NCBI GenBank assembly: GCA_002269645.1
Contig: NIVC01000130.1
Coordinates: forward strand, 434,001-498,000
Reading direction: 5' to 3'
Length of the DNA: 64,000 bases
DNA from: Macrostomum lignano
Lineage: Eukaryota
The position numbers and the translations under genes were made by a program. Below, in pieces: positions 3,501-59,345 of the stretch (position 1 is the first letter of the stretch; every line of letters starts with the position of its first letter). The notes below the pieces were generated by a model. The model did not search any database. It was given only the letters and a program-made list of their open reading frames with translations, and had not been told where the DNA came from.

Positions 3501-6500
3501 TGATGCCGGAGTGAGGTGGGTGTTGCCGGAGTGAGGTTGGTGATTCTGGAGTGAGGTGGGTGTTGCCGGAGTGAGGTTGGTGATGCTGGAGTGAGGTGGG
3601 TGTTGCCGGAGTGAGGTTGGTGATTCTGGAGTGAGGTGGGTGTTGCCGGAGTGAGGTTGGTGATGCTGGAGTGAGGTGGGGTGATGCCAGAGTGAGGTGG
3701 GTGATGCTGGAGTGAGGTGGGTGATTCTAGAGTGAGGTGGGGTGATGCTGGAGTGAGGTGGGTGTTGCCGGAGTGAGGTTGGTGATTCTGGAGTGAGGTG
3801 GGTGTTGCCGGAGTGAGGTTGGTGATGCTGGAGTGAGGTGGGGTGATGCCAGAGTGAGGTGGGTGATGCTGGAGTGAGGTGGGTGATTCTAAAGTGAGGT
3901 GGGGTGATGCTGAAGTGAGGTGGGTGTTGCCGGAGTGAGGTTGGTGATTCTGGAGTGAGGTGGGTGTTGCCGGAGTGAGGTTGGTGATGCTGGAGTGAGG
4001 TGGGGTGATGCCAGAGTGAGGTGGGGTGATGCTGGAGTGAGGTGGGTGTTGCCGGAGTGAGGTTGGTGATGCTGGAGTGAGGTGGGTGTTGCCGGAGTGA
4101 GGTTGGTGATTCTGGAGTGAGGTGGGTGTTGCCGGAGTGAGGTTGGTGATGCTGGAGTGAGGTGGGGTGATGCCAGAGTGAGGTGGGTGATGCTGGAGTG
4201 AGGTGGGTGATTCTAGAGTGAGGTGGGTGATGCTGGAGTGAGGTATGGTGATGCTGGAGTGAGGTGGGGTGATGCCAGAGTGAGGTGGGGTGATGCTGGA
4301 GTGAGGTGGGTGTTGCCGGAGTGAGGTTGGTGATGCTGGAGTGAGGTGGGTGTTGCCGGAGTGAGGTTGGTGATTCTGGAGTGAGGTGGGTGTTGCCGGA
4401 GTGAGGTTGGTGATGCTGGAGTGAGGTGGGGTGATGCCAGAGTGAGGTGGGTGATGCTGGAGTGAGGTGGGTGATTCTAGAGTGAGGTGGGTGATGCTGG
4501 AGTGAGGTATGGTGATGCTGGAGTGAGGTGGGTGATTCTGGAGTGAGGTGGGTGATTCTGGAGTGAGGTGGGGTGATGCCAGAGTGAGGTGGGTGATCCT
4601 GGAGTGAGGTGGGTGATCCTGGAGTGAGGTGGGTGATCCTGGAGTGAGGTGGGTGATCCTGGAGTGAGGTGGGTGATGCTGGAGTGAGGTGGGTGATGCT
4701 GGAGTGAGGTGGGTGATTCTGGAGTGAGGTGGGTTATGCCAGAGTGAGGTGGGTGATTTTGAAGTGAGGTGGGTGATGTCGGAGTGCGATGGGGTGATTC
4801 TGACCTACACGTCAGTCCCATTCCCCGCACTCACTTGAATATTAACACCTGGCACACTGTAGGCCTTGCCAGGTGTAATTTCCACCGGAGTGCTAATCTG
4901 TTCCTCAAAGCCTTTTATTTCTCCACCAGGCGTGTTAACCAGCAGCACACCGAATCTGAGCTGATCTTCAGGTTTAATATAGGCCAAGCTGGTTATGGTG
5001 AGGCCGAGCGTAGAAGCATTATAAGGCAAAGTTTCGAATACTTTAACACCTGGCGGAGTGTTGAGCAGCTGTAGTTCGTAGCGGATCGGTACGCCGTTGA
5101 AGCGATCAGGCTGCTGCCAGGTGCATCGCACCTTATTGAGCTGATTGGGCACAGGTGAACAGGCAAAGCCTCTCGGCTTGGTGGCTTTGTACGGGTCGGT
5201 TCGAATCACAATACCAGCAGGTGGCGTCACTGCGGCAGTTTCCGTTGCTCCATTGAATTCCACTTTAGCTTCGATAGTAAAATGGTACCAAGTGTAGGGT
5301 AGCAGATCAGGTGCCAGGTGGGTTGCACCAGTTTCCGTTTTAGGAGTGGAGGAGTTCCGAACTACGTTGTAACGGACATCGCATAAGCCGTGAGTAACTG
5401 CTTTCCATGTCAGCTTAACAGTATCATGAGTTGTTTCTATGGCGGTAACGTTGCGAACAAGCACACTGGCGCTTAGATCGCCAATTTTTGTTTTGCTGGG
5501 GACGGAAGCCTCGCTGCTGTTGCCGTAATTGTTCTCCGTGAGTATCTTAAAGTTGTAGTTACCGCACTGAGTGAGGGGGGTCGCCCGGTAGGTCTGAAGA
5601 GAGATGTTGAATGAATGCGAGGTTCTCATCTTAAACTTGAACAGCTGACCTGACCTTGCTCGCACACTCTGAGAGTTGTAGCCTAGTGGTTAGAGCGTCG
5701 GACTCACGACTTGAAGGCCGGGGGTTCGATTCCCAGTCCCACCCGAAACAATTTGTGTCCTTGAGCAAGACACTTAACTCTGAATTGCTTCAGTTCACCC
5801 AGCTGTAAACTGGGTACCAGAATTAGGCACAGATACTAGAATAACTAGATGGGCCACTCAGCACATTCGCGTATAAACTACTTACAGTTCAGTAGTAAGT
5901 TAAACAAGCATTTTCATGTATGAGCCAAGGCTCATTTTTTGTTTCTTACTGATTTATTAGCTTTAAACCATCCAACCGTGCCTTTCTACTATCCCCCTGC
6001 CCCAATTTTATTGCCTTTCCGGAATTCCAGCCTAAAGCAGCGATGTACATTTCAGTGGACTGGCCAATGTACATTACTGCTGAACCAATTAGCAAGAATT
6101 GTTTACGCCTGCAAGCTAGAAAGCTGTTTTACTAAGGTGGCTAATCTATTTATTAGCTGTGGTAATTGAGGCTGTGTGTGGCGACCCCCCTCCAGTCCTT
6201 GGACTGAACAGCCGAACGCAGCCTTCAGATGCGCTGTCGGTTGCACATCTGGCCCAATTGGCTTCGCCCTCACGGGTGTTTAATGCTGCTGTTCTACTCA
6301 CCTCTAAAGAATAGTCAGTCAGCGAAGTCCAAAGACTTTTAACAGAGCCTGTTTCAATCCTGAACCAGTACTGCTGGAACACGCCATTCAGCATAGTAGG
6401 CGGAGTCCAGCCCAGCACAGCGAATGTGTCTCCTATTTCCTTCACATTGAGACCTTCAGGTGGATCAGGCGTGTCCGGCAGAGTTCGATCGGTGCGACTC

Positions 6501-9500
6501 CAAGTCTGTCCGGCCAGAGTCTGGCTGACTGGCGTCACGGACACGCTGTAGTTGGCCCAGGGCCACAGGCCAAGCAGCTTGATGGGTGCCGACGAGCTGA
6601 TGTTGGAGATCTGCGAACAGCCAGAGAGCAGCTGGTTGACTGTGTCGCTAACGTTGCACTTATCCGGCGGTGACAGCTCGCAGGTCAAATTCAAGTCCAT
6701 CACGTAGCCCCCAATACAGCTTCCATTGCTGGCACTTAAGCTAACAGTGTAGGCCATGATGCGGCCTCGAGTCACGGCTGGCAGGCCGAAGTTCAGGTCA
6801 ATCTGGCGCCTGTCAGGCGTCAGAACTGGCGAGCTAACTGGATCGCTCGGCTGCTCAAGTGTTCGGGCAACGGAGCTGGTGCTGCTCGGACCTGGACCGG
6901 CTCGATTCACCGGCCACACGGTGATTCGGTAGGGCGTGTACGGCTCCAGAATGTCGCCAGTGTCCACCTGCAGGTCCTGGCCGTTAGTCTGGCTGTAGCT
7001 GAAGCTCGAATTTGTCACATTTGAGCAGCCGTCCAGTTCGCTCAACGGCCCGGGGAGTTGACGTCGCGAACAGTCGGTGCACACTATTCTAGCCGCAAAA
7101 GAGCAGCTAATGGGGCTGTTGCCGCTGCTAACGTTGATCTTATCCAGCCGCAGGACGTACTCAAATATCAGGCCTCGGCTAAACTGGAAGCTCTTCCACA
7201 GCGAGACCACGCCTTGACCGCGGCGGCTGGCAAACTGAGGCGCTTCTTTCAGTGACTTGCTCGGTGCCAAATCCTTGAGCAAAGTCAGATTAGTTTTAGG
7301 GCTGGGCGGACTCTCGCCCGCCGAGGTCCACGCGGTGACGCTGCAGTCGTACTGGACTCCGGGAGACAAGTCGTTAATGGTGGCGTAAAAGGTAGTGTTA
7401 GTGCCGGCGTCAAGTGTGACGTTCTTCGGCACGGAGTTGACCCCGGAGCCGATGCCATTGGCGAAGCAGCGCACAGTGTAGGCAATGATGACACCGTTGG
7501 GCTCGGACGGAGGCGACCAAGACAGCTGCAGCCAGTCGGTGCTGAAGTTGTTGGCCTGAGCATCTTGCGGAGCCGACGGGGAATCCTGTGGAGTCGCCTG
7601 CAGTGTCGGCGGTACCGCTGGCGACGTTCGTTCGTAATAGGCAGCGTTGACATTAAGCGAGTAGTTCGTGTGGGGCGACAGCGGCTGGAACTCGAGTTCG
7701 CAGGACTGCACCCATCGAGGGCAAGATTTATTGAATAAGACGTTGCCAGCAATATTGCTAAGTTGTGCAATGAGCAGCTCAGAATGCGAGGTGGCCTCCA
7801 GTTTGACTTTGAGGCTTCTACTATTCACAGATGTCCAAGTCGCATTAGGCGCGCTAGGATCTGAAATTGATTGACAATCAAATTATGAAGATAAAATGCC
7901 AGTCTTGTGAAAGGGCAGGTTTCGCAAGCCACAACTCCACAAACTTCCAACTCCACAAACCCCCAACTCCACAAACTCCAACTTCACAAACACAAATTCC
8001 ACAAACCCCAACTTCACAAACCCCCATCTCTACAAACCCCAAATTCACAAACACAAATTCCACAACCCCCAACTCCACAAACCCCCAACTCCACAAACCC
8101 CCAACTCCCCAAACCCCAACTTCATAAACCCCCAACTCCACAAACCCCAACTCCCCAAACCCCCAACTCCACAAACCCCCAACTCCCCAAACCCCAACTT
8201 CACAAACCCCAACTTCACAAACACAAATTCCACAAAACCCCAACTCCACAAAGCCCCAATTCCACAAACCCCCAACTCCCCAGACCCCAATTCCACAAAC
8301 CCACAACTCCCCAAACCCCAACTTCACAAACACAAATTCCACAAACCCCTAACTCCCCAAACCCCTAACTCCCCAAACCCCAACTCCACAAACCCTTAAC
8401 TCCCCAAACCCCAACTCCACAAACCCCCAACTCCACAAACCCCAACGCCACAAACCCCAACTTCACAAACACAAATTCCACAAACCCCTAACTCCCCAAA
8501 CCCCAAATCCACAAACCCTTAACTTCCCAAACTTCAAAATCACAAACCCTCAATTCCACAAGCCCCCAACTCCACAAAGCCCCAACTCCACAAAGCCACA
8601 ATTCCACAAACCCTAACTTCACAAACCCCTGACTCCACAAACACAAAATCCACAAACCCCGAACCTCCACAAACCCCAACTCCACAAACCCCGAATTCCA
8701 CCAACCCTAAACTCTACAAACAGCAACCATATGAGAATTCTAAAGTTCACAATCCTCAGGTTTCACAAGACTATGAACTACAAAAGAGCCAAAACTACTG
8801 AAGAAAATACTTACTCACACAGCCTAAAAGCACCCAATACGAGTATGGCTACCCTAAACAGATTGCAAGCCCCGATTATAAATTGCACCTGCAAGCATCA
8901 GCCACTCACCTGTACGCTGTACAACCGTATAAGTTCCGGAGCTGTTTTGCACCAAACCGTCTTTTTCGGCAACAGCCACCACTTCAATGGTTACATTATC
9001 CGAATAGGCGTATTCGCCTTTAAACTCTGCTTTCAACTTATCAAATGTCTCTTTCTTATTCATATTAAGCTTTGAAGATTTCAAATCGATGCTCAGAAAG
9101 TCTGCACCAATTGCGACGGTGCTGGTCCACACTGCGCTCAGAGCAGAGTTTGCCAGCGTTACGGCGTCCAGCTTAAAGTCGGTGCTAAATGTTGCGCTGC
9201 TGGCGTTGAGACGGGGCTCTGAAATGTTGCGTTAAACAGGGAATGCTTCTTTTTATCAAGGACGACTTAAGTAGAAGGACGGGAAACCTCGTTTCTTGGA
9301 CAATTTTCGAAAGCAGCTTTTTTTGAAAAAATACACTACAGAGATAGAAAGTTTTCATTTTTTCTGCACAAAAATTGCTATTGCTTTTGATAGGAGGCAG
9401 ATCCAGTGTTCATCTTTTGATATGTTGTGCCTTTCTTATTGCTCTAGCTATCGATATTCATAAAGCTTTTCGTTTAGAAAATTAGGATTCTATGTTAATT

Positions 9501-12500
9501 TTTATTCATAAAAGAATCATAAAAATGCATGGCACAGCTCCAATCTTTGCTTTTATGAATCCATTTTATCATCTATGTTACAAATATTTGTTACACAGTC
9601 AGCTAAGAAGGATAAAATAGATTCATAAAACCAAAGAGCCGAGCCGTGGCATTTTATTGGATTTCAGGCACAAGACACCTGAAAATCTACGTAGAATAAA
9701 AATCTACTATAAAACACTAGTATTTAAAATCGCATCTTACTAGTCAGAGCCTTCGACATTGCCGGTAATGAATCCACGAAGCCGGCCTTCTTAACAATGA
9801 TATCAATACTTTGCACTGAGCCGGGGCTTAAGCCAGTTTGGTTCGTGCTAGTCTCGCTCAGCTCTTCTGTAGGGTTTGAGCCGATGGTCACTGAGTACTG
9901 CACGTTGAGACTGTTGGATGCATTCCAGCTCACGTGCACGCTCTCGTAAGTTGAACTCCAAACGATGGACGCGTTGGTTACGGGAGACAGGCCTGGGAGA
10001 AGCAGATTGCGAACAAATTAACAGATGCATTTTATTTCAAATAAGCAAGAAATGGGGAAAAAAGATTGAACTGTTGAACTCACGAGTCTGTCCCACTATA
10101 CTGGCGGGAGAGCTGTTGTTAAAGCCAGGCTTAACCACAACAACAGTTGCTGTGAGGTTCTCTCCCGACTGCAGACCGCAGCAGCTGCCTTTCAGCTCTC
10201 CGCCGGCATCAATCGAAAAATTTGAGCCACAGGTCAGGTTGTATGTCACACCTGACGTATTGGAGGCTTGCCACTCTACATCAAGACAGTTCACGTTGGA
10301 GTTCTTCACGGTGACAGAAGCCACGGGAGCGACCACTGGAAGCAAATCAAACAAGGTGTACAAATGTGCATTTTTCAATACAGTTATAGTTAATACTGCT
10401 CATACTTATTCACTGACTGCAGTGTCTTCAGTGTATAGTAAGTTAATAACTGTCTGATACAAACTGTACCAAAACAACTCTAAAGAAATTTTAAGCTCCG
10501 AAAAAAGGCAAAGGCGGAGCTGTCGCTCAAGCTGCATCAGCTGCTGCAATCATTTCTGCTGCAAAATCAGAGTGATGGAAAGCAGTAAAATTTGAAAAAT
10601 TGTGTTAAAGGCCACGCATCTGAAACTTAAAAAATTTCTACATTGGTGACATCACTGCAGTAAAAAGGCTTTTGTATTGGCCTTAAAGTTGCACCACATC
10701 CACAGCAATTTTTTCAACACTTTGAAAATTGAATTACAAGCCTGCGTCAGATCAGCTATTAAGCATGGGTGAACTCGCTACCTGGCAAAAACTGTCGTCA
10801 ACTTACATTCTGCTTTGCGGAGGAATTTACGAGTAATTTATACAAAAAATCAAAGCCGTCAGTCAAAGCTCAGCCCCGTCAATCAACATCCCTAAAAGCC
10901 GCAAAGCATCACAGTCGAATTAAAGGCCTGCGTCAGTTGAGCAATTAAGCATCAAGCACTCTGATTTGCAGAGGAATTTAATTCAGAAAAATCAAACTTC
11001 AGCCCTGTCAGTCAACATCCCTAAAAGCCGCAAAGCATCACAGCAACAAAGCCATCTGACTCAGAGCAGCTCATCTGAGCACACAGAGCTGCTGAACTCA
11101 CGAGTCTGTCCCACTGTACTGGCGGGAGAGCTGTTGTTAAAGCCAGGCTTAACCACAACAACAGTTGCTGTGTGGTTCTCTCCTGACTGCAGACCGCAGC
11201 AGGAGCCTGAGGTTCCTGAGTCCACTACAATTGCACCTGACCCACAGTCAAGCTCGTATGTCACACCCGATGTATTGGAGGCTGGCCACTCTACATCAAG
11301 ACAGGTCACATTGGATTTCATCACGGTGACAGAAGCCACAGGTGACACCACTGAAACCGGGTTGCAATTCGTGTGACAAATAAGGTCAGTTAGAGCACAA
11401 TAAATCGTGCGCTATTGTTGGATAGCTGTTGCAAAAAATAAAATAAAAACTTAAAAGATCACTACGCTACTGAAAGTAGTAAGTTAGGACTTTCCGGTCA
11501 ATAATTAACCCCTCATAAGTGCTCTGTAAAATGACAATAGTTACATGCACGTCGGAAGCCTCACAAAAACATCGAAGAAGCCACGTCACAAAAACTACTT
11601 ATGAGTAAAGGTGAGTGAATACAATGCACTCTTGTGCCCTAATTGCACTGCTTGAAACTTTCCTTGATTTTCAAATTCGATTTCTACAGACTAATTGCAA
11701 AGCCTTTGCTGGGTTTCAGTGCACAATTTGAATCAAACAATGCCCCGGCGCTGAGGCAAGAAACTCAGAAACATCGGCTGTGAAAACTCACGAGTCTGTC
11801 CCACTCTACTGGCGGGAGAGCTGTCGTTAAAGCCAGCCTTAACCACAACAACATATTTTTCACTGACTGCAGTGTCTTCAGTTCTGGTATAGTAAGTTAA
11901 TAACAATCTGATACAAACTGTACCAAACACCTCTACAAAAGCTGTAAACTCCGAAAAAGGCAAAGGCGGAGCTTTCGCTCAAGCTGCATCAGCTGCTGCA
12001 ATCATTTCTGCTGCAAAATCAGAGCGATGGAAAGCAGTAAAATTTGAAAAATTGTGTTAAAGGCCACGCAACTGAAACTTAGAAAATTTTTTAGATTGGT
12101 GACGTCATTACAGCAAAAAAGCTTTTGTATCGGCCTGAAAGTTGCACCACATCCACAACAATATTTTAGACACTTAAAATTTGAATTACAGGTCTGCGTC
12201 AGTTGAGCAATTAAGCATCAGTGAACCCGCTACTTGTAAGACCTTGACATCCACATTAGAATTTGCAGGGGAATTTAATTCAGAAAAATCAAAGCCGTCA
12301 GTCAAAACTCAGCCCCATTAATCAACATCCCTAAAAGCCGCAAAGCATCACAGCAACAAAGCCATCTGACTCAGAGCAGCTCATCTGAGCACACAGAGCT
12401 GCTGAACTCACGAGTCTGTCCCACTGTACTGGCGGGAGAGCTGTTGTTAAAGCCAGGCTTAACCACAACAACAGTTGCTGTGTGGTTCTCTCCTGACTGC

Positions 12501-15500
12501 AGACCGCAGCAGGAGCCTGAGGTTCCTGAGTCCACTACAATTGCACCTGACCCACAGTCAAGCTCGTATGTCACACCCGATGTATTGGAGGCTGGCCACT
12601 CTACATCAAGACAGGTCACGTTGGAGTTCTTCACGGTGACAGAAGCCACGGGTGACACCACTGAAACCGGGTTTCAGTTCGTGTGACAAAGAAGGTCAGT
12701 AAGGGGAGCTCAAATCCTGTGTCGATAAGGGCTTGGAGTTTCCAAAAAATATAAAAATTACTTAAAAGATCGCTACGCTACTGAAAGTAGCGAGTTGTGA
12801 CTTTTCTGTCAATAGTAAACCCTTCATATTCATAAATGCTCTGTAAAATTCCACACGTTACACGCAAGTCGGAAACCTCACAGCAATATCAAAGAAACCA
12901 CGTCACAAAAATTAGATACGAGTATGAGTAAACGTGACTCAAAACAATGCACTCTTGTGCCCTGAGTGCACTAATTCAATCTTTACTCGAGCTTAAATTT
13001 CGATTTCTACAGAAACTCCACTGGGTATGGGAGTCCGCTCATCCCTATTCGTTGTGCTTTGGATTGATTCAATTAGTAAGATATCGTAGCAAAAATTTTA
13101 TCTCTACTCTAACTATACCCAAAAATTTACAACATGGGTCATGCCGTGAATGAAACCCAGTTGCACTGCCAAAATCAATGCAAGAATTTTAGAAAGATTA
13201 GGATCAGAAAACTCACGAGTCTGTGCCATTGTACTGGCGGGAGAGCTGTTGCTAAAGCCAGGCTTAACCACAACAACAGTTGCTGTGAGGTTCTCTCCCG
13301 ACTGCAGACCGCAGCAGCTGCCTTTCAGCTCTCCGCCGGCATCAATCGAAAAATTTGAGCCACAGGTCAGGTTGTATGTCACACCTGACGTATTGGAGGC
13401 TTGCCACTCTACATCAAGACAGTTCACGTTGGAGTTCTTCACGGTGACAGAAGCCACGGGAGCGACCACTGGAAGCAAATCAAACAAGGTGTACAAATGT
13501 GCATTTTTCAATACAGTTATAGTTAATACTGCTCATACTTATTCACTGACTGCAGTGTCTTCAGTGTATAGTAAGTTAATAACTGTCTGATACAAACTGT
13601 ACCAAAACAACTCTAAAGAAATTTTAAGCTCCGAAAAAAGGCAAAGGCGGAGCTGTCGCTCAAGCTGCATCAGCTGCTGCAATCATTTCTGCTGCAAAAT
13701 CAGAGTGATGGAAAGCAGTAAAATTTGAAAAATTGTGTTAAAGGCCACGCATCTGAAACTTAAAAAATTTCTACATTGGTGACATCACTGCAGTAAAAAG
13801 GCTTTTGTATTGGCCTTAAAGTTGCACCACATCCACAGCAATTTTTTCAACACTTTGAAAATTGAATTACAAGCCTGCGTCAGATCAGCTATTAAGCATG
13901 GGTGAACTCGCTACCTGGCAAAAACTGTCGTCAACTTACATTCTGCTTTGCGGAGGAATTTACGAGTAATTTATACAAAAAATCAAAGCCGTCAGTCAAA
14001 GCTCAGCCCCGTCAATCAACATCCCTAAAAGCCGCAAAGCATCACAGTCGAATTAAAGGCCTGCGTCAGTTGAGCAATTAAGCATCAAGCACTCTGATTT
14101 GCAGAGGAATTTAATTCAGAAAAATCAAACTTCAGCCCTGTCAGTCAACATCCCTAAAAGCCGCAAAGCATCACGGCAACAAAGCCATCTGACTCAGAGC
14201 AGCTCATCTGAGCACACAGAGCTGCTGAACTCACGAGTCTGTCCCACTGTACTGGTGGGAGAGCTGTTGTTAAAGCCAGGCTTAACCACAACAACAGTTG
14301 CTGTGTGGTTCTCTCCTGACTGCAGACCGCAGCAGGAGCCTGAGGTTCCTGAGTCCACTACAATTGCACCTGACCCACAGTCAAGCTCGTATGACACATC
14401 TGATGTATTGGAGGCTGGCCACTCTACATCAAGACAGGTCACGTTGGAGTTCTTCATGGTAACAGAAGCCACGGGTGACACCACTAAAACCGGGTTGCAA
14501 TTCGTGTGACAAAGAAGGTCAGTTAGAGGAGCTCAAATTCGGTGTCGATAAGGGCTTGTAGTTTCCAAAAATTAAAAAATTACTTAAAAGATCGCTAGAC
14601 CAATGAAAGTAGTGACATTAGGACATTCATGCAATAATACAACCTTCTGTGGAACGACAGTAACTTCAAAGTAACATCATTTAATTTAGGTCACAAAAAG
14701 TACGTATAAAAAACGTGACTGAATGCAGTGCACGCTTGTGCCTCTACTGCACTCGTTGAACTTTTGTTTGAGTTTAAATAATCTCGATTTCTACAGACAA
14801 ATTCAAAAGCATTTGCTGGGTTCGCAGTGCACAATTCGAATAGAAAATATCACCGCAACGTTACTGTTGCGCTCTGGATTGATTCAATTTATTAGATATC
14901 AGAGCAAAACTGTTCATTCAATGAGTCATGTCGTGAATGAAATCACGTTGCACTACCACAAAATTCTCCTCCCTAAGGTAAACTGTTGCACCGGAGTTGG
15001 CCTGAGCAGTTGCAGCTGGCGTCAGTGCGGTGAGAGCGTGCTGGCTGGTCCTGTAGTAGGTCTTGAACACCAAGTCGATGGCGTCCTCGAAGGCTCGAAC
15101 TTCACTCCCGCCCTTAAGTTCGACTCAGCGGTTGCCCTTTGAGTAACACTGGCTAGCTCGGCTGTGTCGGATGCCCTCCGCTTGCAGGAAGTCCTCGAAC
15201 TCTTCGCTGACGAACTGGGGCCCGTTGTCGCCGATCAGCATTTTTGGCACACCGCATCGACCGAATAGTTTCTGTAGCGCTTTGATAATGTTGGCAGAGG
15301 CCACTGTCTCCATGGCTGCAGTCTTCGGTCACTTGCTGTAGAGATCGTGGATCCCCAGTAGGAATCGCTGATGTCGAGGAGCTGCGGCGACCTCGCCGAA
15401 GATTTCGATCTCGACCTTTGTCCCACGGTCCATCTGGCCACTCGACTGGTGCCACGGTTGTCTGGTGCGGCTTGCCGGTCTTCTCCGCGAGGTTGCAGGC

Positions 15501-18500
15501 CGTGCAGTTCTTGACGTGGTCCTCTACGTGCTGAGCAATCCCAGGAAACCAGACCGTGTCGACGCACTGACTGATGCTCCAACAGAAGAGCTTCTCGCGG
15601 ATGTTGTACTACGGCCGAAGAGTACCAGTACTGCTTACCTCGGTCGGCCAGCCGTCAGCGATGTGTCGTAGAACCGGCTGCAATTCTTCGTCATTCCTGG
15701 TTGCAGTCGCTAGCTTATCGTCCATTTGCGTTGTATTCAAGTCGAAAATTGCGTAGAGGTAGCTCTCCTCATCTGTCTCGACTGAAACGCGTTCGGTCGT
15801 GGCCCATTTGTACAGCATGTCTGCGCACTGGTTCTCAGCGTCAATGCTTCTCGCTCGCCGCTGAGTATCTCTTTTCCGCTAGACTCAGAGCTCTTGACGC
15901 GAACACGATTGGCACCTCTTGTCCATTTCATCTCTTTGCTTCTTGCTAAGCGCCTTTATGTGGAGCTCTGAGCTGCTAAACTGCTTGGCGTCCCTGCATG
16001 ATGGCTGCTTCGATTCGCTCGACCTTCTTAATGGCGTCGTCAAGCGTCAGACTATGTCCCAAATCAGCAGTCTTTTCGTGATGCGAGGTTCGCATGTTTT
16101 CTTCACGAGTTGGTCCCGTATCATCACACGGTGGAAGTTGCCAAAGTTGCAGTTTGTTGCCAGTTCTCTCAAGGCCATCATGTTGTCTCCGATGCTCTCG
16201 CCGTCATGCTGGGCTCGCAGCCGAAAGACGAAGCGCTCTGCTATGACGCTTCTCGACGAGTTGAAAATCCCCTTCAGTGCCTTTTTGGCCAACTGAAGCG
16301 ACTTGCTTGCATCGACGTTTGCAGCTCGTCGGCGTCCTTCCTCACTGAGTAGATGCAGGGGGATCGCCTTTTTCCGACACTCTGATGCCCCTTCAAGATT
16401 TCCAGCTACCAGAAAGTTCTCAAATGACTTGATCCACCTTGCCCATGGCACAAGAGGTTTACCTGGTTGAAACTCCACTGGGTATGGGAGTCCGCTCATC
16501 GCTATTCGTTGTGCTTTGGATTGATTCAATTAGTAAGATATCGTAGCAAAAATTTTATCTCTACTCTAACTATACCCAAAAATTTACAACATGGGTCATG
16601 CCGTGAATGAAACCCAGTTGCACTGCCAAAATCAATGCAAGAATTTTAGAAAGATTAGGATCAGAAAACTCACGAGTCTGTGCCATTGTACTGGTGGAAG
16701 AGCTGTCGTTAAAGCCAGGCTTAACCACAACAACAGTTGCTGTGAGGTTCTCTCCCGACTGCAGACCGCAGCAGCTGCCATTCAGCTGTTTGCCGGCATC
16801 AATCGGAGAATTGGAGCCACAGGTCAGGTTGTATGTCACACCTGACGTATTGGAGGCTGGCCACTCTACATCAAGACAGTTCACGTTGGAGCCCGTCACG
16901 GTGACAGAAGCCACGGGAGCGACCACTGGAAGCAAATCAAACAAGGTGTACAAATGCATGCATTTTTAAATACAGCGATAGTTAATACTGCTCATACTTA
17001 TTCACTGACTGCAGTGTCTTCAGTTCTGGTATAGTAAGTTAATAACAATCTGATACAAACTGTACCAAACACCTCTACAAAAGCTGTAAGCTCCGAAAAA
17101 AGGCAAAGGCGGAGCTGTCGCTCAAGCTGCATCAGCTGCTGCAATCATTTCTGCTGCAAAATCAGAGCGATGGAAAGCAGTAAAATTTGAAAAATTGTGT
17201 TAAAGGCCACGTATCTGAAGCTTAAAAAATTTCTACATTGGTGACATCACTGCAGTAAAAAGGCTTTTGTATTGGCCTTAAAGTTGCACCACATCCACAG
17301 CAATTTTTTCAACACTTTGAAAATTGAATTACAAGCCTGCGTCAGATCAGCTATAAGCATGGGTGAACTCGCTACCTGGCAAAAACTGTCGTCAACTTAC
17401 ATTCTGCTTTGCGGAGGAATTTACGAGTAATTTATACAAAAAATCAAAGCCATCAGTCAAAGCTCAGCCCCGTCAATCAACATCCCTAAAAGCCGCAAAG
17501 CATCACAGTCGAATTAAAGGCCTGCGTCAGTTGAGCAATTAAGCATCAAGCACTCTGATTTGCAGAGGAATTTAATTCAGAAAAATCAAACTTCAGCCCT
17601 GTCAGTCAACATCCCTAAAAGCCGCAAAGCATCACGGCAACAAAGCCATCTGACTCAGAGCAGCTCATCTGAGCACACAGAGCTGCTGAACTCACGAGTC
17701 TGTCCCACTTTACTGGCGGGAGAGCTGTTGCTAAAGCCAGGCTTAACCACAACAACAGTTGCTGTGTGGTTCTCTCCTGACTGCAGACCGCAGCAGGAGC
17801 CTGAGGTTCCTGAGTCCACTTTAATTGCACCTGACCCACAGTCAAGCTCGTATGTCACACCCGATGTATTGGAGGCTGGCCACTCTACATCAAGACAGGT
17901 CACGTTGGAGTTCTTCACGGTGACAGAAGCCACAGGTGACACCACTAAAACCGGGTTTCAGTTCGTGTGACAAAGAAGGTCAGTTAGAGCACAATAAATC
18001 GTGCGCTATTGTTGGATAGCTGTTGCAAAAAAACCTTAAAAGATCACTACGCTACTGAAAGTAGTAAGTTAGGACTTTCCGGTCAATAATTAAACCCTCA
18101 TAAGTGCTCTGTAAAATGACAATAGATACATGCACGTCGGAAGCCTTACAAAAACATCGAAGAAGCCACGTCACAAAAACTACTTATGAGTAAACGTGAG
18201 TGAATACAATGCACTCTTGTGCCCTAATTGCACTGCTTGAAACTTTCCTTGATTTTCAAATTCGATTTCTACAGACTAACTGCAAAGCCTTTGCTGGGTT
18301 TCAGTGCACAATTTGAATCAAACAATGCCCCGGCGCTGAGGCAAGAAACTCAGAAACATCGGCTGTGAAAACTCACGAGTCTGTCCCACTATACTGGCGG
18401 GAGAGCTGTCGTTAAAGCCAGCTTAACCACAACAACAGTTGCTGTGAGGTTCTCTCCTGACTGCAGACCGCAGCAGCTGCCATTCAGCTGTTTGCCGGCA

Positions 18501-21500
18501 TCAATCGAAGAATTGGAGCCACAGTCAAGCTCGTATGTCACATCCGATGTATTGGAGGCTGTCCAGTCTACATCAAGACAGGTCACATTGGATTTCGTCA
18601 CGGTGACAGAAGCCACGGGTGACACCACTGAAACCGGGTTGCAATTCGTGTGACAAATAAGGTCAGTTAGAGCACAATAAATCGTGTGCCATTGTTGGAT
18701 AGCTGTTGCAAAAAATAAAATAAAAACTTAAAAGATCACTACGCTACTGAAAGTAGTAAGTTAGGACTTTCCGGTCAATAATTAACCCCTCATAAGTGCT
18801 CTGTAAAATGACAATAGATACATGCACGTCGGAAGCCTCACAAAAACATCGAAGAAGCCACGTCACAAAAACTACTTATGAGTAAACGTGAGTGAATACA
18901 ATGCACTCTTGTGCCCTAATTGCACTGCTTGAAACTTTCCTTGATTTTCAAATTCGATTTCTACAGACTAACTGCAAAGCCTTTGCTGGGTTTCAGTGCA
19001 CAATTTGAATCAAACAATGCCCCGGCGCTGAGGCAAGAAACTCAGAAACATCGGCTGTGAAAACTCACGAGTCTGTCCCACTCTACTGGCGGGAGAGCTG
19101 TCGTTAAAGCCAGCCTTAACCACAACAACAGTTGCTGTGAGGTTCTCTCCCGACTGCAGACCGCAGCAGCTGCCATTCAGCTGTTTGCCGGCATCAATCG
19201 GAGAATTGGAGCCACAGGTCAGGTTGTATGTCACACCTGACGTATTGGAGGCTGGCCACTCTACATCAAGACAGTTCACGTTGGAGCCCGTCACGGTGAC
19301 AGAAGCCACGGGAGCGACCACTGGAAGCAAATCAAACAAGGTGTACAAATGCATGCATTTTAAAATACAGCGATGGTTAATACAGCTCATACTTATTCAC
19401 TGACTGCAGTGTCTTCAGTTCTGGTATAGTAAGTTAATAACAATCTGATACAAACTGTACCAAACACCTCTACAAAAGCTGTAAGCTCCGAAAAAAGGCA
19501 AAGGCGGAGCTGTCGCTCAAGCTGCATCAGCTGCTGCAATCATTTCTGCTGCAAAATCAGAGCGATGGAAAGCAGTAAAATTTGAAAAATTGTGTTAAAG
19601 GCCACGTATCTGAAGCTTAAAAAATTTCTACATTGGTGACATCACTGCAGTAAAAAGGCTTTTGTATTGGCCTTAAAGTTGCACCACATCCACAGCAATT
19701 TTTTCAACACTTTGAAAATTGAATTACAAGCCTGCGTCAGATCAGCTATTAAGCATGGGTGAACTCGCTACCTGGCAAAAACTGTCGTCAACTTACATAC
19801 TGCTTAGCGGAGGAATTTACGAGTAATTTATACAAAAAATCAAAGCCATCAGTCAAAGCTCAGCCCCGTCAATCAACATCCCTAAAAGCCGCAAAGCATC
19901 ACAGTCGAATTAAAGGCCTGCGTCAGTTGAGCAATTAAGCATCAAGCACTCTGATTTGCAGAGGAATTTAATTCAGAAAAATCAAACTTCAGCCCTGTCA
20001 GTCAACATCCTTAAAAGCCGCAAAGCATCACAGCAACAAAGCCATCTGACTCAGAGCAGCTCATCTGAGCACACAGAGCTGCTGAACTCACGAGTCTGTC
20101 CCACTTTACTGGCGGGAGAGCTGTTGCTAAAGCCAGGCTTAACCACAACAACAGTTGCTGTGTGGTTCTCTCCTGACTGCAGACCGCAGCAGGAGCCTGA
20201 GGTTCCTGAGTCCACTTTAATTGCACCTGACCCACAGTCAAGCTCGTATGTCACACCCGATGTATTGGAGGCTGGCCACTCTACATCAAGACAGTTCACG
20301 TTGGAGCCCGTCACTGTGACAGAAGCCACAGGTGACACCACTGAAACCGGGTTGCAATTCGTGTGACAAATAAGGTCAGTTAGAGCACAATAAATCGTGT
20401 GCCATTGTTGGATAGCTGTTGCAAAAAATAAAATAAAAACTTAAAAGATCACTACGCTACTGAAAGTAGTAAGTTAGGACTTTCCGGTCAATAATTAACC
20501 CCTCATAAGTGCTCTGTAAAATGACAATAGATACATGCACGTCGGAAGCCTCACAAAAACATCGAAGAAGCCACGTCACAAAAACTACTTATGAGTAAAC
20601 GTGAGTGAATACAATGCACTCTTGTGCCCTAATTGCACTGCTTGAAACTTTCCTTGATTTTCAAATTCGATTTCTACAGACTAACTGCAAAGCCTTTGCT
20701 GGGTTTCAGTGCACAATTTGAATCAAACAATGCCCCGGCGCTGAGGCAAGAAACTCAGAAACATCGGCTGTGAAAACTCACGAGTCTGTCCCACTCTACT
20801 GGCGGGAGAGCTGTTGTTAAAGCCAGGCTTAACCACAACAACAGTTGCTGTGAGGTTCTCTCCCGACTGCAGACCGCAGCAGCTGCCATTCAGCTGTTTG
20901 CCGGCATCAATCGGAGAATTGGAGCCACAGGTCAGGTTGTATGTCACACCTGACGTATTGGAGGCTGGCCACTCTACATCAAGACAGTTCACGTTGGAGC
21001 CCGTCACGGTGACAGAAGCCACGGGAGCGACCACTGGAAGCAAATCAAACAAGGTGTACAAATGCATGCATTTTTAAATACAGCGATAGTTAATACTGCT
21101 CATACTTATTCACTGACTGCAGTGTCTTCAGTTTCGGTATAGTAGTTAATATCTGTCTGATACAAACTGTAGAAAGGTGTAAACATACAGTCATTCCGAA
21201 TGCAGCAGCAATCTTATACAGACAGTCTGTACATCTTACGCTCCTTAGTAATCAGAATTACCACCTGCTATCTTCGTCGTCATCATTTCGTCTTACTAAA
21301 AATATATTAAACTGCAGTAAATAAAACCTTGCTATCAAACTGTTTAAGCATTTGATGATGAAGGAAGGTAAACACACTGAAGTTTCCATTTGCAGCTAGT
21401 AGCTGCTTTAAAAAAGCACCCTTACTGCACAAGAAGAACTGCGCAAATTCACAGTTTCTAAATTTCTCAGGAAATTCCGAACAAAATTACATGTATAAGC

Positions 21501-22782
21501 TTCGATAGTTTTAAGTAGCAAAACCTTGCATAGTTGCTAACACAAAATCCAAGTGGAGCAAAGTTGTTGATGACTCGATACACAGCGTTCTTCATAAACT
21601 TTGATTTAACGAATTGCAAACATTTATCGTATCCCCTGCATTCATTGCCTCTGACCGGATAGGCATTTCAAGTGTGCTTTAGTGTGTGACAGTGTCTGCT
21701 TTAGTGTGTCACAGTGTCTGCTTTAGTGTGTCACAGTGTCTGCTTTAGTGCGTCACAGTGTCTGCTTTAGTGTGCCACAGTGTCTGCTTTAGTGTGTCAC
21801 AGTGTCTGCTTTAGTGTGTCACAATGTCTGCTTTAGTGTGCCACAGTGTCTGCTTTAGTGTGTCACAGTGTCTGCTTTAGTGTGTCACAGTGTCTGCTTT
21901 CGTGTGTCACAGTGTCTGTTTTAGTGTGTCACAGTGTCTGTTTTAGTGTGTCACAGTGTCTGTTTTAGTGTGTCACAGTGTCTGTTTTAGTGTGTCACAG
22001 TGTCTGTTTTAGTGTGTCACAGTGTCTGCTTTAGTGTGTCAGTGTCTGCTTTAGTGCGTCAGTGTCTGTCTTAGTGTGTCACAGTGTCTGTCTTAGTGTG
22101 TCACAGTGTCTGTCTTAGTGTGTCACAGTGTCTGTCTTAGTGTGTCACAGTGTCTGTCTTAGTGTGTCTTTGCGTTTCTCTTAGTGAGCCGTTCTGTTTT
22201 AACACATCTGTCATAGGAAGACATTTGCTCAAAAATGGGGTTGCTGAGTTTCAAAAGCTCCAAGAGAAAAGGTGTCTGAGATTACAAAAGTCAAGAGCCA
22301 ACTACAATTGATGTCAGCGCTGTTTCCAAGTGTTTGACCCAGAAGCTTCACTCACGAGTTTTGCCTGTGGCGCTGCTGGGCGGGCTGTCCAGATGTCCTG
22401 GAGCTTGTGCTACGACTGTCACGCTGTGCTCTGCGCCGGAGCTCAAACCGGTACAGGTGTAGCTGCTGGCGGTGATGTTGCATTCAAGAGGCTTTCCCGA
22501 GCAGTTGACACAGTATGAGGCGCCTGCTCCTGACACAGGCGTCCATGAAAAATACACCGAATCTACCGTGGCTCTTGCCGCATCCGATTTGAGATCGGTC
22601 ACCGACGGTAGAGTTGGAGTTGGAGTTGGAGTTGGAGTTGTCGGAGCTTCCGTAGGCGCCTCCGTAGTTGTCGCTGGTGCGTCGGTTGTCGATGCTTTCG
22701 TCAACTGCAGGACCGGCAAACTGCAGACTGTCAACAGAAGCAGCACTGCTGACGCCCGCGAACTACTAGCAGGAGTTGGCAT
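510..22782 (-). CDS. Multi-exon single-pass FN3-repeat receptor, probably an R3-subtype receptor protein tyrosine phosphatase (PTPRB/PTPRJ/Ptp10D-like); 3' part outside the window
   Basis: Signal peptide, T/P-rich stretch, many FN3 repeats, and an R3-type stalk (FNDSYGKIRY...CNGPL...YRVYLVACT), followed by the TM helix LIGGIVGGVLGALLVVAIVVLLI and KR. The GT-AG exons join in frame (about 2190 codons in the window if the two broken cassettes are skipped). No PTP domain is visible, so the phosphatase call rests on ectodomain architecture. Confidence 0.75.
1017..1043 (-). CDS. 27-nt candidate micro-exon (RPEWYESGF)
   Basis: ttttag acceptor, TG|GTTAGT donor, phase 2-2, no stop. Confidence 0.45.
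1085..1595. repeat. Minisatellite, 21-22 bp (gaggaggccagccaatgaggt)
   Basis: Directly visible; intronic. Confidence 0.9.
1774..1818 (-). CDS. 45-nt juxtamembrane micro-exon (GSKPPENANGFSNTN)
   Basis: atttcag acceptor, AG|GTAAGT donor, phase 2-2, in frame with the TM exon. Confidence 0.65.
1853..2822. repeat. Minisatellite, 20 bp (cttcacagacacccagctca)
   Basis: Directly visible; intronic. Confidence 0.95.
2892..3457 (-). CDS. Receptor stalk and transmembrane exon
   Basis: acccag acceptor, R3-RPTP-like stalk, 23-aa hydrophobic helix, GG|GTGAGT phase-2 donor. Confidence 0.85.
3470..4800. repeat. Minisatellite, about 20 bp (ggagtgaggtgggtgatgct)
   Basis: Directly visible; fills almost the entire intron. 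Confidence 0.95.
4835..5668 (-). CDS. Receptor FN3 exon (834 nt)
   Basis: LLPYTWYHFTIEA and WQQPDRFNGVPIRYEL motifs; phase 0-0 sites (ctctcag acceptor, CAA|GTGAGT donor). Confidence 0.8.
5671..6263 (+). mobile_element. tRNA-derived CORE-type SINE split by a roughly 325-bp insertion
   Basis: A box TAGCCTAGTGG and B box GGTTCGATTCC, then TGTGTCCTTGAGCAAGACACTTAAC...CTGTAAACTGGG, which resembles the MIR CORE. The 3' part at 6152-6263 matches the contiguous copy at 40833-41075. Confidence 0.75.
6302..7860 (-). CDS. Receptor large FN3 exon (1559 nt)
   Basis: Canonical FN3 motifs (LSWSPPSEPNGVIIAYTV, LSPGVQYDCSVTAWTSAGES, LEPYTPYRITVWPVNRAGPG). atttcag acceptor; GAG|GTGAGT phase-0 donor. Confidence 0.85.
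7925..8715. repeat. Degenerate ccccaactccacaaa-type minisatellite
   Basis: Directly visible; intronic. Confidence 0.9.
8910..9218 (-). CDS. Receptor ectodomain exon (309 nt, atypical domain)
   Basis: atttcag acceptor, G|GTGAGT donor, phase 1-1, open frame. Confidence 0.75.
9518..9657. mobile_element. Small fold-back/MITE-like element
   Basis: Imperfect inverted arms of about 50 bp (tctttgcttttatgaatccattttatc / gataaaatagattcataaaaccaaaga). Confidence 0.45.
9741..9992 (-). CDS. Single-copy FN3 exon (252 nt)
   Basis: cccag acceptor, A|GTAAG donor, phase 1-1; LSPVTNASIVWSSTYESVHVSWNAS...GLSPGS. Confidence 0.8.
10084..10335 (-). CDS. FN3 cassette exon, type A (252 nt)
   Basis: Intact splice sites, open frame. 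Confidence 0.8.
11102..11350 (-). CDS. FN3 cassette exon, type B (249 nt)
   Basis: Intact splice sites, open frame. Confidence 0.8.
11792..11853 (-). pseudogene. Truncated type-A FN3 cassette (3' 62 nt and donor only)
   Basis: The exon 3' end (VVVVKAGFNDSSPASRVGQT) is fused directly to upstream intron sequence; the normal acceptor and the first 190 nt are missing. Confidence 0.75.
12412..12660 (-). CDS. FN3 cassette exon, type B (249 nt)
   Basis: Intact splice sites, open frame. Confidence 0.8.
13217..13468 (-). CDS. FN3 cassette exon, type A (252 nt)
   Basis: Intact splice sites, open frame. Confidence 0.8.
14235..14483 (-). CDS. FN3 cassette exon, type B (249 nt)
   Basis: Intact splice sites, open frame. 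Confidence 0.8.
14990..16500 (-). mobile_element. Degenerate, internally deleted Ty3/Gypsy LTR-retrotransposon fragment (gag N-terminus, pol connection, integrase)
   Basis: Gag-like EFQPGKPLVPWARWIKSFENFL...KKA; integrase zinc finger VWFPGIAQHVEDHVKNCTAC; integrase core GDNGPQFVSEEFEDFLQAEGIRH. Many frameshifts; no LTRs recognised. Confidence 0.85.
16674..16925 (-). CDS. FN3 cassette exon, type A (252 nt)
   Basis: Intact splice sites, open frame. Confidence 0.8.
17696..17944 (-). CDS. FN3 cassette exon, type B (249 nt)
   Basis: Acceptor ttttag, donor GTGAGT, open frame. Confidence 0.8.
18377..18627 (-). pseudogene. Chimeric B/A FN3 cassette with a 1-nt deletion (251 nt)
   Basis: aaagccagcttaacc near 18421, versus aaagccaggcttaacc or aaagccagccttaacc in sister exons. 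The frame ends KLALTTALPPV-stop. Splice sites are intact. Could be a sequencing error. Confidence 0.65.
19069..19320 (-). CDS. FN3 cassette exon, type A (252 nt)
   Basis: Intact splice sites, phase 1-1, open frame. Confidence 0.8.
20092..20340 (-). CDS. FN3 cassette exon, type B with an A-type patch (249 nt)
   Basis: Acceptor tttcag, donor GTGAGT; VTGSNVNC (A-type) joined to ELDCGSGAIKV (B-type). Confidence 0.8.
20782..21033 (-). CDS. FN3 cassette exon, type A (252 nt)
   Basis: Acceptor ttccag, donor C|GTGAGT, phase 1-1, open frame. Confidence 0.8.
21680..22168. repeat. Minisatellite, 20 bp (tgtcacagtgtctgctttag)
   Basis: Directly visible. Confidence 0.95.
22356..22782 (-). CDS. Receptor first coding exon: signal peptide, Thr/Pro mucin-like stretch, first FN3
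   Basis: ATG at 22782 (MPTPASSSRASAVLLLLTVCSLPVLQLTKA); phase-1 donor C|GTGAGT at 22355. Confidence 0.85.
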
Positions 22783-27899: not shown

Positions 27900-33494
<5,595 letters not shown>

Positions 33495-33699
33495 CTGCCC
33501 CCAACCTGTTCAGGACGCTGCTCACCTGCTTACGACGGGCGGAAAAATGGCTTGGTATTCCTACTGTTAATGTTTTTTGAAATTCCCAACCCGTAAACTT
33601 TTGTTGTATATTTCTATTGTATTAGCTATAACAAAAAACAGCTGTTAGAACGCACAAATTTGGGCCGTACTCCTGAAAAAGGTCAACCCCCCTCAGAGT

Positions 33700-38867: not shown

Positions 38868-39988
38868 ATGCAGCAACTGAGAAGACTGATGAAGCTAGTG
38901 CTGTTCCTGATGGCGCTACTGCTGCTGGCCCTGGGGATGCATCGTGAGATCTTCGGCAGTCGCATCCACTCAGTTATTTCTTCAAAGAGGCGGGCCATGA
39001 AAACAAAGGACACGGTGCCAGCGACTGTTGACAACCCTCTGCCGTCGGGTGCCTGCGGCGCCTACAGCGAGCTCCGCAGCGTCAATTTCCTGCACAAGTC
39101 CATCAGCGAGAGCATCTGCGAAGGCGCCGCCGCCTACACCATCGTGGACAGCGCGTTTCCGCTCTGCCGACTCAAGCAGCACCTGCCGCACGTGCTCACC
39201 GAAGGCGTCAGAGCTGCGAGCGTGCAGACCTTCATCAGAAGCCCCTCACCCAGAGAAACGTCTCCAGCTTCGTCTACTCGAGTCCCGACCTCATCTCGAC
39301 CAGCATCCGCACGGAGCACATCTTCGAGGAGCGGAACGTCCGCATCATGCAGCAAATCATTCGCAACCTGGCCGCCAAGTCGCCCGTCACCTTCGTGGAC
39401 GTCGGCTCGAACATCGGCGTGTTCAGCCTGTCGGTCCTCGATCTCGGAGTGCCCGTCATCGCGCTGGACGCGAACATCCGCAACCTGATTCGAATCAAGC
39501 TGTCAGCCGAGGCGGCCAATTCGCCTCACAAGCTGCACCTGCTGTGGAACTTCGTCAGCAGGCAGGTGTCGCTCATGTACCTGAACTTCCCGAAGGACTG
39601 CAACATTGGCGGCGCCACCAAGTTCGGCAGAGCCGTCGTCGACACGATCCCGGTGATGTCGGCCACTGCGGACTCCATCGTGCCGCTCATCGACACCAAG
39701 CTGGTCGTGTTGAAGGTCGACATCGAAGGAGGCGAAGGCGAGTTCTTCAAGAGCGCGAAGAAGCTGTTCGACACCTTCACGATTCCCGTGGTGCACATGG
39801 AGTGGCTGAGGAAGCACATGAGCGAGGAGGAGCGCCAGTTCATGATCAGCTTCTTCGCTGAGAGGCGCTACAGCGCGAGGAGCACGAACGATCTGACGAA
39901 GTTGATCAACATCAGCCACACAGGGTATCAGGGAGATGACCTTGTTTGGGTGCACAAGGATATTGAGGATGCAGGCGTGCTGCTTTGA
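38868..39988 (+). CDS. Type II membrane FkbM-family (Methyltransf_21) SAM-dependent methyltransferase, paralogue 1; one frameshift near 39245
   Basis: N-terminal anchor LVLFLMALLLLALGM; motifs FVDVGSNIG, KVDIEGGE and VHMEW. It has AGCCCCTC (4 C) where paralogue 2 has 5 C, so this is either a real pseudogenising deletion or a homopolymer sequencing error. Confidence 0.8.
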
Positions 39989-42566: not shown

Positions 42567-42683
42567 TGTTGAGCGCACCTGCAATGTTTTTAAAGATTTA
42601 ATTACGTTTTTTCCAGCGGGGCACGAGGGATGAACAGTTCCAGGGGTCTGGCAATAATCTGAAACAAGCTTTTGCGGCTAAAA

Positions 42684-58749: not shown

Positions 58750-59345
58750 CTGAGCAGCACTCAGCAGCACACAACTCAGTATTTGAGCAGCACTCAGCAG
58801 CACACAACTCAGTATTTGAGCAGCACTCAGCAGCACACAACTCAGTATTTGAGCAGCACTCAGCAGCACACAACTCAGTATTTGAGCAGCACTCAGCAGC
58901 ACACAACTCAGTATTTGAGCAGCACTCAGCAGCACACAACTCAGTATTTGAGCAGCACTCAGCAGCACACAACTCAGTATTTGAGCAGCACTCAGCAGCA
59001 CACAACTCAGTATTTGAGCAACACATTTAACTCAATATTTGAGCAGCACATTCAACTCATATTTGAGCAGCACTCAGCAGCACACAACTCAGTATTTGAG
59101 CAACACATTTAACTCAATATTTGAGCAACACATTCAACTCAATATTTGAGCAGCACATTCAACTCAATATTTGAGCAGCACATTCAACTCAGTATTTGAG
59201 CAGCACATTCAACTCAATATTTGAGCAGCACATTCAACTCAATATTTGAGCAGCACTTAGCAACACATTCAACTCAATATTTGAGCAGCACTTAGCAACA
59301 CATTCAACTCAATATTTGAGCAGCACTTAGCAACACATTCAACTC
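58750..59345. repeat. Minisatellite (gagcagcactcagcagcacacaactcagtattt and shorter variants)
   Basis: Directly visible; abuts the SLBP stop codon. Confidence 0.92.

Follow-up and report, generated by a model that had tools for sequence, protein, structure and literature searches.

Receptor protein tyrosine phosphatases (RPTPs) of the R3 subtype, such as Ptp10D/Ptp4E, C. elegans DEP-1, PTPRJ/DEP-1, PTPRH/SAP-1, PTPRB, and PTPRQ, have N-glycosylated ectodomains made up of fibronectin type III (FN3) domains only, typically with one FN3 domain per phase 1:1 exon, followed by a juxtamembrane Cys motif (C.G.CNGPL...CTS.GC) and a single transmembrane segment. Here, we describe a gene of the flatworm Macrostomum lignano that appears to share this layout and is predicted to be similarly glycosylated. 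It lies on the minus strand of the window that we analyzed, a 64-kb stretch of one assembly (GCA_002269645.1, contig NIVC01000130.1, positions 434,001 to 498,000), and all coordinates below are those of the window. The gene is collinear with the R3 RPTPs from a Cys-loop FN3 domain to the transmembrane segment. It differs from them in that its N-terminal domains belong to a four-Cys cassette type without detectable relatives outside M. lignano, and in that its number of domains has been inflated by a very recent amplification of two exons.

Single-exon FN3 cassettes that can be skipped are found in tenascin-C (A1-D) and fibronectin (EDA/EDB), where their splicing has been demonstrated and is regulated. 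Like those of M. lignano, they are symmetric, derive from tandem duplication, and are frame-neutral to skip, but they are old and diverged with unrelated introns, whereas the M. lignano introns are 97-100% identical. Repeats of domain exons together with near-identical introns occur in the LPA kringle IV-2 (a two-exon unit), the DMBT1 SRCR exons, and the CR1 long homologous repeats, all with documented copy-number polymorphism; there, as here, unequal crossing-over changes length in frame. The M. lignano array departs from these in having two alternating exon types that exchange sequence and thus yield chimeric exons. Dscam1/sDscam likewise encode variants of an Ig fold in a surface receptor by a tandem exon array, but each of their mutually exclusive exons encodes only part of a domain and is selected through docking/selector RNA pairing, whereas the M. 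lignano exons encode whole domains and would be additive. A search for pairing of this type among the M. lignano introns returned only 16-22-nt imperfect inverted matches (79-94%), none of which links the first intron to every unit, and with no consistent docking/selector complementarity, we reject a Dscam-like competition. CD45 (PTPRC) is comparable if the M. lignano protein is a receptor phosphatase, having heavily glycosylated membrane-distal segments encoded by skippable exons that change the size of the ectodomain; it is of a different RPTP subtype, and its segments are O-glycosylated and mucin-like rather than FN3. Neither this array nor FN3 arrays of Macrostomum in general had been described in the papers that a literature search returned.

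We read the array, with a rough probability of 0.6, as a recent, lineage-specific, intragenic amplification of FN3 domains that provides a glycosylated FN3 stalk on an R3-RPTP-like flatworm receptor. The anatomy of the array, the fold of its units, its history of duplication and recombination, the species, and the homology of the ectodomain are established. The proposed function is, as in other R3 RPTPs, that of a rigid and heavily glycosylated stalk by which the ectodomain would be both lengthened and shielded. On this reading, the array offers a clean, datable case of the growth of an FN3 receptor, in which a chimeric exon, a truncated exon, and conversion tracts are still visible.

An alternating array of two cassette types

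Twelve identical donors (...GACTC/GTGAGT; here and below, a slash in a sequence marks an exon end) lie on the minus strand between 10084 and 21033 (Table 1). An earlier note on this DNA had placed an array of 12 symmetric one-domain FN3 cassettes in this range, whose limits indeed coincide exactly with the start of the first A exon (21033) and the end of the last (10084). The sequence ahead of each donor recovers the alternation of A (252 nt) and B (249 nt) exons that the note had described, with the same C/GTGAGT donor and phase 1-1, and all of the amino-acid blocks it had named are present in the combinations it had given. The number 12 holds for the donors but not for the cassettes. When symmetry is defined as a length divisible by 3 with equal flanking phases, 10 exons pass (five A and five B), whereas exon X, which is 251 nt long because of a 1-nt deletion and has an in-exon stop, and remnant t, a 60-nt stump, fail. 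Each intact cassette is preceded by a CAG or TAG acceptor, begins with TG, and ends with C, which gives phase 1-1, and any junction between two cassettes restores a CTG (Leu) codon. The frame arithmetic behind the earlier suggestion of free exon skipping is correct in that the loss of any intact cassette would leave the reading frame unchanged. However, one FN3 domain per phase 1:1 exon is the predominant arrangement in R3 RPTPs across animals (PMC5336234), and symmetric one-exon cassettes are therefore expected here rather than special.

The ancestral unit consists of an A exon, a 441-nt intron, a B exon, and a 770-nt intron (~1.7 kb in all), and the strictly alternating array is equal to 13 ancestral exons. 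As had been proposed, the introns were duplicated along with the exons, with 97.1-99.9% identity among copies of the B>A intron and 97.7-100% among those of the type-1 A>B intron; a second type of A>B intron (556 nt) follows A4 and A3. No two of the 10 intact domains have the same protein sequence. In our proposed history, an older two-exon A+B unit would have been multiplied recently by unequal crossing-over into an alternating array with the equivalent of 13 exons, after which one B and one A exon would have fused into exon X, one A exon would have been truncated, and a retroelement would have inserted into one intron.

These three lesions can each be traced. In exon X, the acceptor and the first ~105 nt are of B type, while the remainder and the downstream intron are of A type, and A>B-type introns lie on both flanks. 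X is the physical product of an unequal crossover between a B and an A exon that removed the intervening B>A intron. Both of its splice sites are intact, and its 1-nt deletion (GTTAAG[C/G]CTGG, at about 18415-18420) leads to the stop, which falls 12 nt before the donor. By its sequence, X is probably a poison exon, the alternative being an assembly indel, as the deletion may be a local assembly error. Remnant t (donor at 11791) has lost the 5' 192 nt of an A exon together with the normal acceptor, and a cryptic CAG 15 nt upstream would yield an in-frame mini-exon of 75 nt. It is preceded by a B>A-type intron and is therefore a truncated A exon. Finally, a 1.9-kb fragment of a long terminal repeat (LTR) retroelement replaces ~300 nt of the type-2 A>B intron between A3 and B3. 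It contains an open reading frame (ORF) for an integrase core (15125-15313; Pfam rve, E 8.7e-8) and a gag-like ORF (16047-16529) with no Pfam match.

The cassette unit is modeled as a compact FN3 domain. An AlphaFold2 model of the A1 unit has seven strands with a predicted local distance difference test score (pLDDT) of 92.5, and Foldseek aligns it with TMq values of 0.82-0.89 to 10Fn3 monobodies and to the FN3 domains of EDB/EDA, tenascin, and DCC. A profile of the cassettes finds fibronectin in the PDB (E 1.3e-8); a Pfam fn3 search with a cassette pair gave no match above threshold. Among the cassettes, W21, Y31, and G53-L54 are invariant or nearly so, in line with the hallmarks of the seven-stranded FN3 sandwich of about 85-90 aa, namely a Trp in strand B, a Tyr in strand C, and a Leu..Gly..Tyr/Thr motif in the EF-F region. 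The four Cys and several sequons per domain to which the earlier note had drawn attention are confirmed. The four Cys occupy fixed positions and are invariant: C16 opens strand B, C35 closes strand C, and the adjacent C51 and C52 close strand E. Since the FN3 topology places all four at the AB/CC'/EF pole, we infer that they form two disulfides per unit. There are 49 NxS/T sequons in the 835 aa of the 10 intact domains (3-6 in each), and those at positions 13, 38, 48, and 71-73 are present in some copies and lost in others; by their sequence, the sequons are likely to carry N-glycans. Residues that vary among the copies map to three regions, namely 10-15 (AB turn), 37-48 (CC'/C'/C'E), and 69-81 (FG loop and G strand).

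The cassette type appears to be restricted to this species. Among 5.8 billion proteins, its only relatives are five fragments, all from M. lignano and one of them 100% identical. The database fragments document the junction of exon 1 to an A exon and that of the last A exon to the next exon, as well as one case of intron read-through. A contig search for further loci encoding fragments P0001 and P0005 found none, and a metagenome scan with the cassette profile produced 222 pattern matches, none of which was confirmed.

Kinship with the R3 receptor phosphatases

Overall, the encoded protein runs from a signal peptide and a Thr/Pro-rich stretch through ~20 FN3 domains to a juxtamembrane module and one transmembrane helix (LIGGIVGGVLGALLVVAIVVLLI). 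All of the ectodomain exons in the window have FN3 or FN3-like matches or align to FN3 proteins, and the array would form the membrane-distal part of a single type-I membrane glycoprotein with an FN3-only ectodomain. Exon 1 ends in phase 1 (...AAAACTC/GTGAGT) and is joined to an A exon in the UniRef fragments P0001 and P0002. Downstream of the array, the exons of 1559, 759, and 566 nt have open reading frames along their whole length, and the first of these exons holds a Cys-loop FN3 domain (VCTDCSRR...GQDLQV) that is common to Ptp10D-like proteins. The transmembrane exon ends in phase 2 (KCKG-GG/GTGAGT) at a donor 2.9 kb from the edge of the window, and at least one further exon must therefore lie beyond it.

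When the C-terminal 943 residues were used as the query of an exhaustive HMMER search, the first matches were the M. lignano protein A0A1I8F7K1 (P0006) and a collinear, 33%-identical metagenome protein (P0008), followed by PTPRQ, Ptp10D-like, and PTPRJ/eta-like proteins that carry Y_phosphatase. In BLASTP, a Ptp10D-like protein of Mya arenaria is collinear from the Cys-loop FN3 domain (CxxC...GQDLQV) to the juxtamembrane motif (C.G.CNGPL...CTS.GC). The Pfam match to PTP_tm (E 1.1e-4, 22.9 bits) is below the cut-off of 26.3, as is that to Fn3_Dep-1 below its curated cut-off. The CNGPL...CTS.GC motif and its flanks align to the Ptp10D-like protein P0124, whose own PTP_tm match is also sub-threshold. 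The transmembrane exon had no match in a homologue search, and no database proteins extending past this exon were found. Of the RPTP scaffold suggested in the earlier note, the membrane-proximal ectodomain is borne out, being collinear with protostome and vertebrate R3 RPTPs (Ptp10D-like, PTPRJ/eta-like, PTPRQ). The window contains no protein tyrosine phosphatase (PTP) domain, and the cytoplasmic part lies past its edge. An R3-RPTP-like ectodomain is supported by these alignments, and we infer that a cytoplasmic PTP domain is encoded beyond the window.

P0006 and P0008 both stop just after the transmembrane segment, and we considered and rejected a tail-less protein. Both stops lie inside GT[GA]AGT donors. 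P0008 is itself a misread gene: a short intron was translated to give its "signal peptide", and no more than 10 nt of its contig follow the "stop". This contig (Ga0450804_1214704, 1-3258, JGI metagenome 3300040801) is genomic DNA of a related animal (33% amino-acid identity) with the layout seen in the window, namely an exon, a short intron, and a giant exon running from FN3 domains to the transmembrane segment; a prokaryote-style gene call rendered the intron as a signal peptide and the GTAAGT donor as a stop. The A0A1I8F7K1 model shows several frame switches against window positions 2892-7860, with ALHQRRGLPRH where the window has ASSASRLAAPSS, and it is unreliable; indel errors are evident in the older assembly from which it derives. 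For annotators, it follows that the gene has a probable poison exon, that older protein models of it are fragmented, and that stops past the transmembrane segment are donor-site artefacts.

Mosaic exons and the question of selection

In a four-gamete test on 11 aligned exon copies, 322 of the 1081 informative site pairs fail, with at least 8 recombination events (Rm). The exons are thus shuffled mosaics, as the earlier note had seen by eye, and its attribution of the mosaics to unequal crossing-over or gene conversion is well supported by this count, by the chimeric exon X, and by a switch of partners in A3. The first three quarters of A3 group with A1/A2, whereas the final 35 nt, along with 205 nt at the start of the downstream intron, group with A4, such that A3 changes partner inside the exon together with the type of the intron that follows. 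Units 3 and 4 share a tract of ~1.15 kb, reaching from B column ~91 to A column ~216, in which they differ at 2 positions; both ends of this tract fall within exons, and the sequences differ beyond them. The A and B exons are 88% identical to each other and also exchange sequence, with CGG/AAA, N/S, and A/T polymorphisms common to both. The block mosaics would reflect crossover or conversion junctions inside exons, in introns, and between A and B.

Columns 147-206 of the exons (GSCCGLQSGEN.TATVVVV) are invariant within each exon type even at synonymous sites, with four differences between A and B. This points to homogenization, as opposed to selection on the protein, behind part of the pattern and speaks against a purely selective reading; the stretch could mark a core of conversion or act as an exonic splicing element.

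Between units, the introns diverge by 0-3%. M. lignano is a neopolyploid with three subgenomes that differ by 1.9-2.4% in single-nucleotide polymorphisms (SNPs), and in the reference assembly analyzed in the same study, 36% of the length lies in chimeric scaffolds (PMC10733133). As the units are about as diverged as the subgenomes, the amplification is recent; divergence at this level is also compatible, to some degree, with a local error of assembly or with a redundant copy under relaxed constraint.

Exons vary more than introns. The variable sites number 37/501 (7.4%) in exons and 34/1196 (2.8%) in all comparable introns (p = 5e-5), or 22/764 in the introns of the four matched units. The variable exon sites are mostly nonsynonymous, with a nonsynonymous-to-synonymous ratio (N:S) of 18:1 in the A exons and about 12:6 in the B exons, which bears out the earlier by-eye impression that most exon differences change amino acids while the introns stay near-identical. 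However, A and B exons can exchange sequence with each other, unlike the A>B and B>A introns. Such exchange can explain 17 of the 37 variable exon sites, and the remaining 20/501 are at the intron level (p = 0.23), which suggests that about half of the exon excess could be due to A<->B exchange. In our proposed mechanism, exchange together with conversion would account for most of it.

Pooled over both exon types, N:S is 30:7, which does not significantly exceed the neutral expectation (p = 0.24). In pairwise comparisons of paralogous copies within the one assembly, pN/pS is ~1 for the B exons and 5.8 for the A exons; the latter value comes from few sites and non-independent pairs and is confounded by A<->B exchange, and for these reasons we do not accept it as evidence of positive selection. 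The older divergence between A and B has a pN/pS of 0.65. The earlier note had named dN/dS as a check on its proposal of a variable receptor. The ratio is not below 1, but this is equally compatible with relaxed constraint. Strong purifying selection on the three surface segments is excluded, and both tolerance and diversifying selection fit. Under the stalk reading, differences among copies would be tolerated (dN/dS ~1) at the AB turn, the CC'-C'E loops, and the FG loop and end of the G strand.

Several points weigh against a simple stalk. This reading assumes constitutive inclusion of all cassettes, and exon X would act as a poison exon if included. A tblastn search of the window with three R3 cytoplasmic domains returned only noise for a PTP domain. 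In addition, the N:S of the A exons is, on its own, marginally significant (p = 0.03); the codon of residue 79 has all four bases at its second position (R/T/I/K), with V in a homeolog fragment; and in homeolog fragment P0003, 7/55 residues differ in the cassette part versus 3/170 in the two following exons (p = 0.002), making the former 8 times more diverged. Taken together, the last three points are hints that selection has been diversifying and that the differences are more than tolerated. In a rival reading, along the lines of the earlier note's proposal, the array would be a diversity-generating module whose copy number and sequence vary among individuals and whose cassettes are freely skipped. 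Hypervariable loops and toggling glycan sites would then give a variable receptor, either for recognition (allorecognition, immune-like, or mating-related) or of tuned size. The frame-neutrality of every intact cassette, the 10 distinct proteins with their toggling sequons, the excess of exon over intron variability, the N:S of 18:1 in the A exons, the four-base codon of residue 79, and the fact that the hot-spot positions differ again in homeolog fragments P0002-P0004 all agree with this idea, as does exon X, which, if its deletion is real, must be skipped to give a productive mRNA. We nonetheless regard it as improbable, given that about half of the exon excess could be exchange with the rest not significant, that the pooled N:S is not above neutral and the older A/B divergence has a pN/pS of 0.65, that a search of the introns showed no docking/selector-type complementarity, and that symmetric FN3 exons are generic in R3 RPTPs. 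A more specific version, to which we give slightly less credence still, has diversifying selection acting on the AB turn, CC'-C'E, residue 79, and the glycan sites for recognition, with variable arrays or transcripts and X always skipped. If it were true, this would be an FN3-based combinatorial flatworm receptor, comparable in principle to Dscam or DMBT1, with a variable ectodomain for self/non-self, mate, or microbe recognition in an outcrossing hermaphrodite. Transgenesis is established in M. lignano (PMC5730564), so the species is tractable for testing.

The lesions could instead mean that the locus is a redundant, decaying homeolog of the neopolyploid genome or is partly an assembly artefact, such that the frameshift and stop in X, the truncation of t, and the transposable element reflect relaxed constraint or mis-assembly. 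The pN/pS of ~1 in the B exons, the three subgenomes, the extent of chimeric scaffolds, and the resemblance of the between-unit divergence to that of the subgenomes are all in line with this account. It is unlikely, however, as the ten cassettes have lost none of their splice sites, none of the four Cys, and none of the core Trp/Tyr/Leu/Gly residues, the large downstream exons are open throughout, and the deletion in X may itself be the sole error; simple false duplication is also disfavored because the copies carry distinct combinations of substitutions and structural features. The protein could also lack a phosphatase altogether and be an FN3-only membrane protein of adhesion or matrix type, with a short tail and an ancestry shared with R3 RPTP ectodomains. 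The absence of a PTP domain from the window and the ends of P0006 and P0008 a few residues past the transmembrane segment would be explained, but both ends are TGA/TAA triplets within consensus GTGAGT/GTAAGT donors, the strong phase-2 donor of the transmembrane exon requires a further exon, and the relatives that align through the juxtamembrane module (P0124, P0150, P0147) carry Y_phosphatase. We consider this very improbable and retain the stalk on an R3-RPTP-like receptor as our preferred reading.

Coordinates and other features of the window

Table 1. Exons of the FN3 gene and features of its cassette array, in window coordinates and in order of transcription.
Feature	Coordinates	Strand	Remarks
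Exon 1	22356..22782	-	ATG, signal peptide (MPTPASSSRASAVLLLLTVCSLPVLQ), Thr/Pro-rich mucin-like stretch, first 4-Cys FN3-like domain; Pfam fn3 E 4.6e-4
Cassette exon A1	20782..21033	-	252 nt, phase 1-1; TGSNVN / NSPIDAGKQLN / SRVG; 100% identical to UniRef fragment P0001
Cassette exon B1	20092..20340	-	249 nt; 5' block TGSNVN of A type (A-to-B exchange)
Cassette exon A2	19069..19320	-	252 nt
Exon X	18377..18627	-	251 nt; B/A chimera; stop at 18389-18391
Cassette exon B2	17696..17944	-	249 nt
Cassette exon A3	16674..16925	-	252 nt; mosaic; 3' end STMAQT
LTR-retroelement fragment in intron A3>B3	14700..16550 (limits approximate)	-	rve E 8.7e-8
Cassette exon B3	14235..14483	-	249 nt
Cassette exon A4	13217..13468	-	252 nt; KNSNVN / NFSIDAGGELK / STMA
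Cassette exon B4	12412..12660	-	249 nt
Remnant t	11792..11851	-	Last 60 nt of an A exon (VVVVKAGFNDSSPASRVGQT), donor intact
Cassette exon B5	11102..11350	-	249 nt; MKSNVT
Cassette exon A5, last of the array	10084..10335	-	252 nt; joined to next exon in UniRef/metaclust fragment P0005
Exon after array	9741..9992	-	252 nt, phase 1-1; Cys-free FN3 (RLSPVTNAS...KALT), 31-32% identical to cassettes
309-nt exon	8910..9218	-	Phase 1-1 (KPRLNASS...VVQRT)
Giant exon	6302..7860	-	1559 nt; several FN3 domains; fn3 E 2.4e-27
759-nt exon	4835..5593	-	Phase 0-0, FN3 domains; junction TDYSLE/TYRATP in P0006
Juxtamembrane and transmembrane exon	2892..3457	-	566 nt; PTP_tm-like (EDCVGECNGPL...ACTSAGC)

Minisatellites with periods of 14-49 nt saturate the window (48 rows in Tandem Repeats Finder, among them 21606-22261, 7925-8721, 3470-4802, and 1855-2822). 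Many give rise to long ORFs, on either strand, that are spurious, and four take up introns of the FN3 gene. A GC-rich remnant of a non-LTR retrotransposon occupies 27900-33500 on the minus strand, with broken frames that include ORFs for Exo_endo_phos_2 (32396-32947) and RVT_1 (31262-32257). Three paralogous intronless ORFs (38868-39988 on the plus strand, 41397-42584 and 47980-49128 on the minus strand) each combine an N-terminal membrane anchor with an FkbM-type methyltransferase domain (Pfam Methyltransf_21, E 1e-8 and 3e-5), the first copy being split across two frames; they form a local gene family. Further ORFs encode a BTB_2 (KCTD-like) domain at 51741-52307 on the plus strand (Pfam E 8.9e-11) and a histone RNA hairpin-binding (SLBP) RNA-binding domain at 59344-60021 on the minus strand (Pfam E 2.3e-24).

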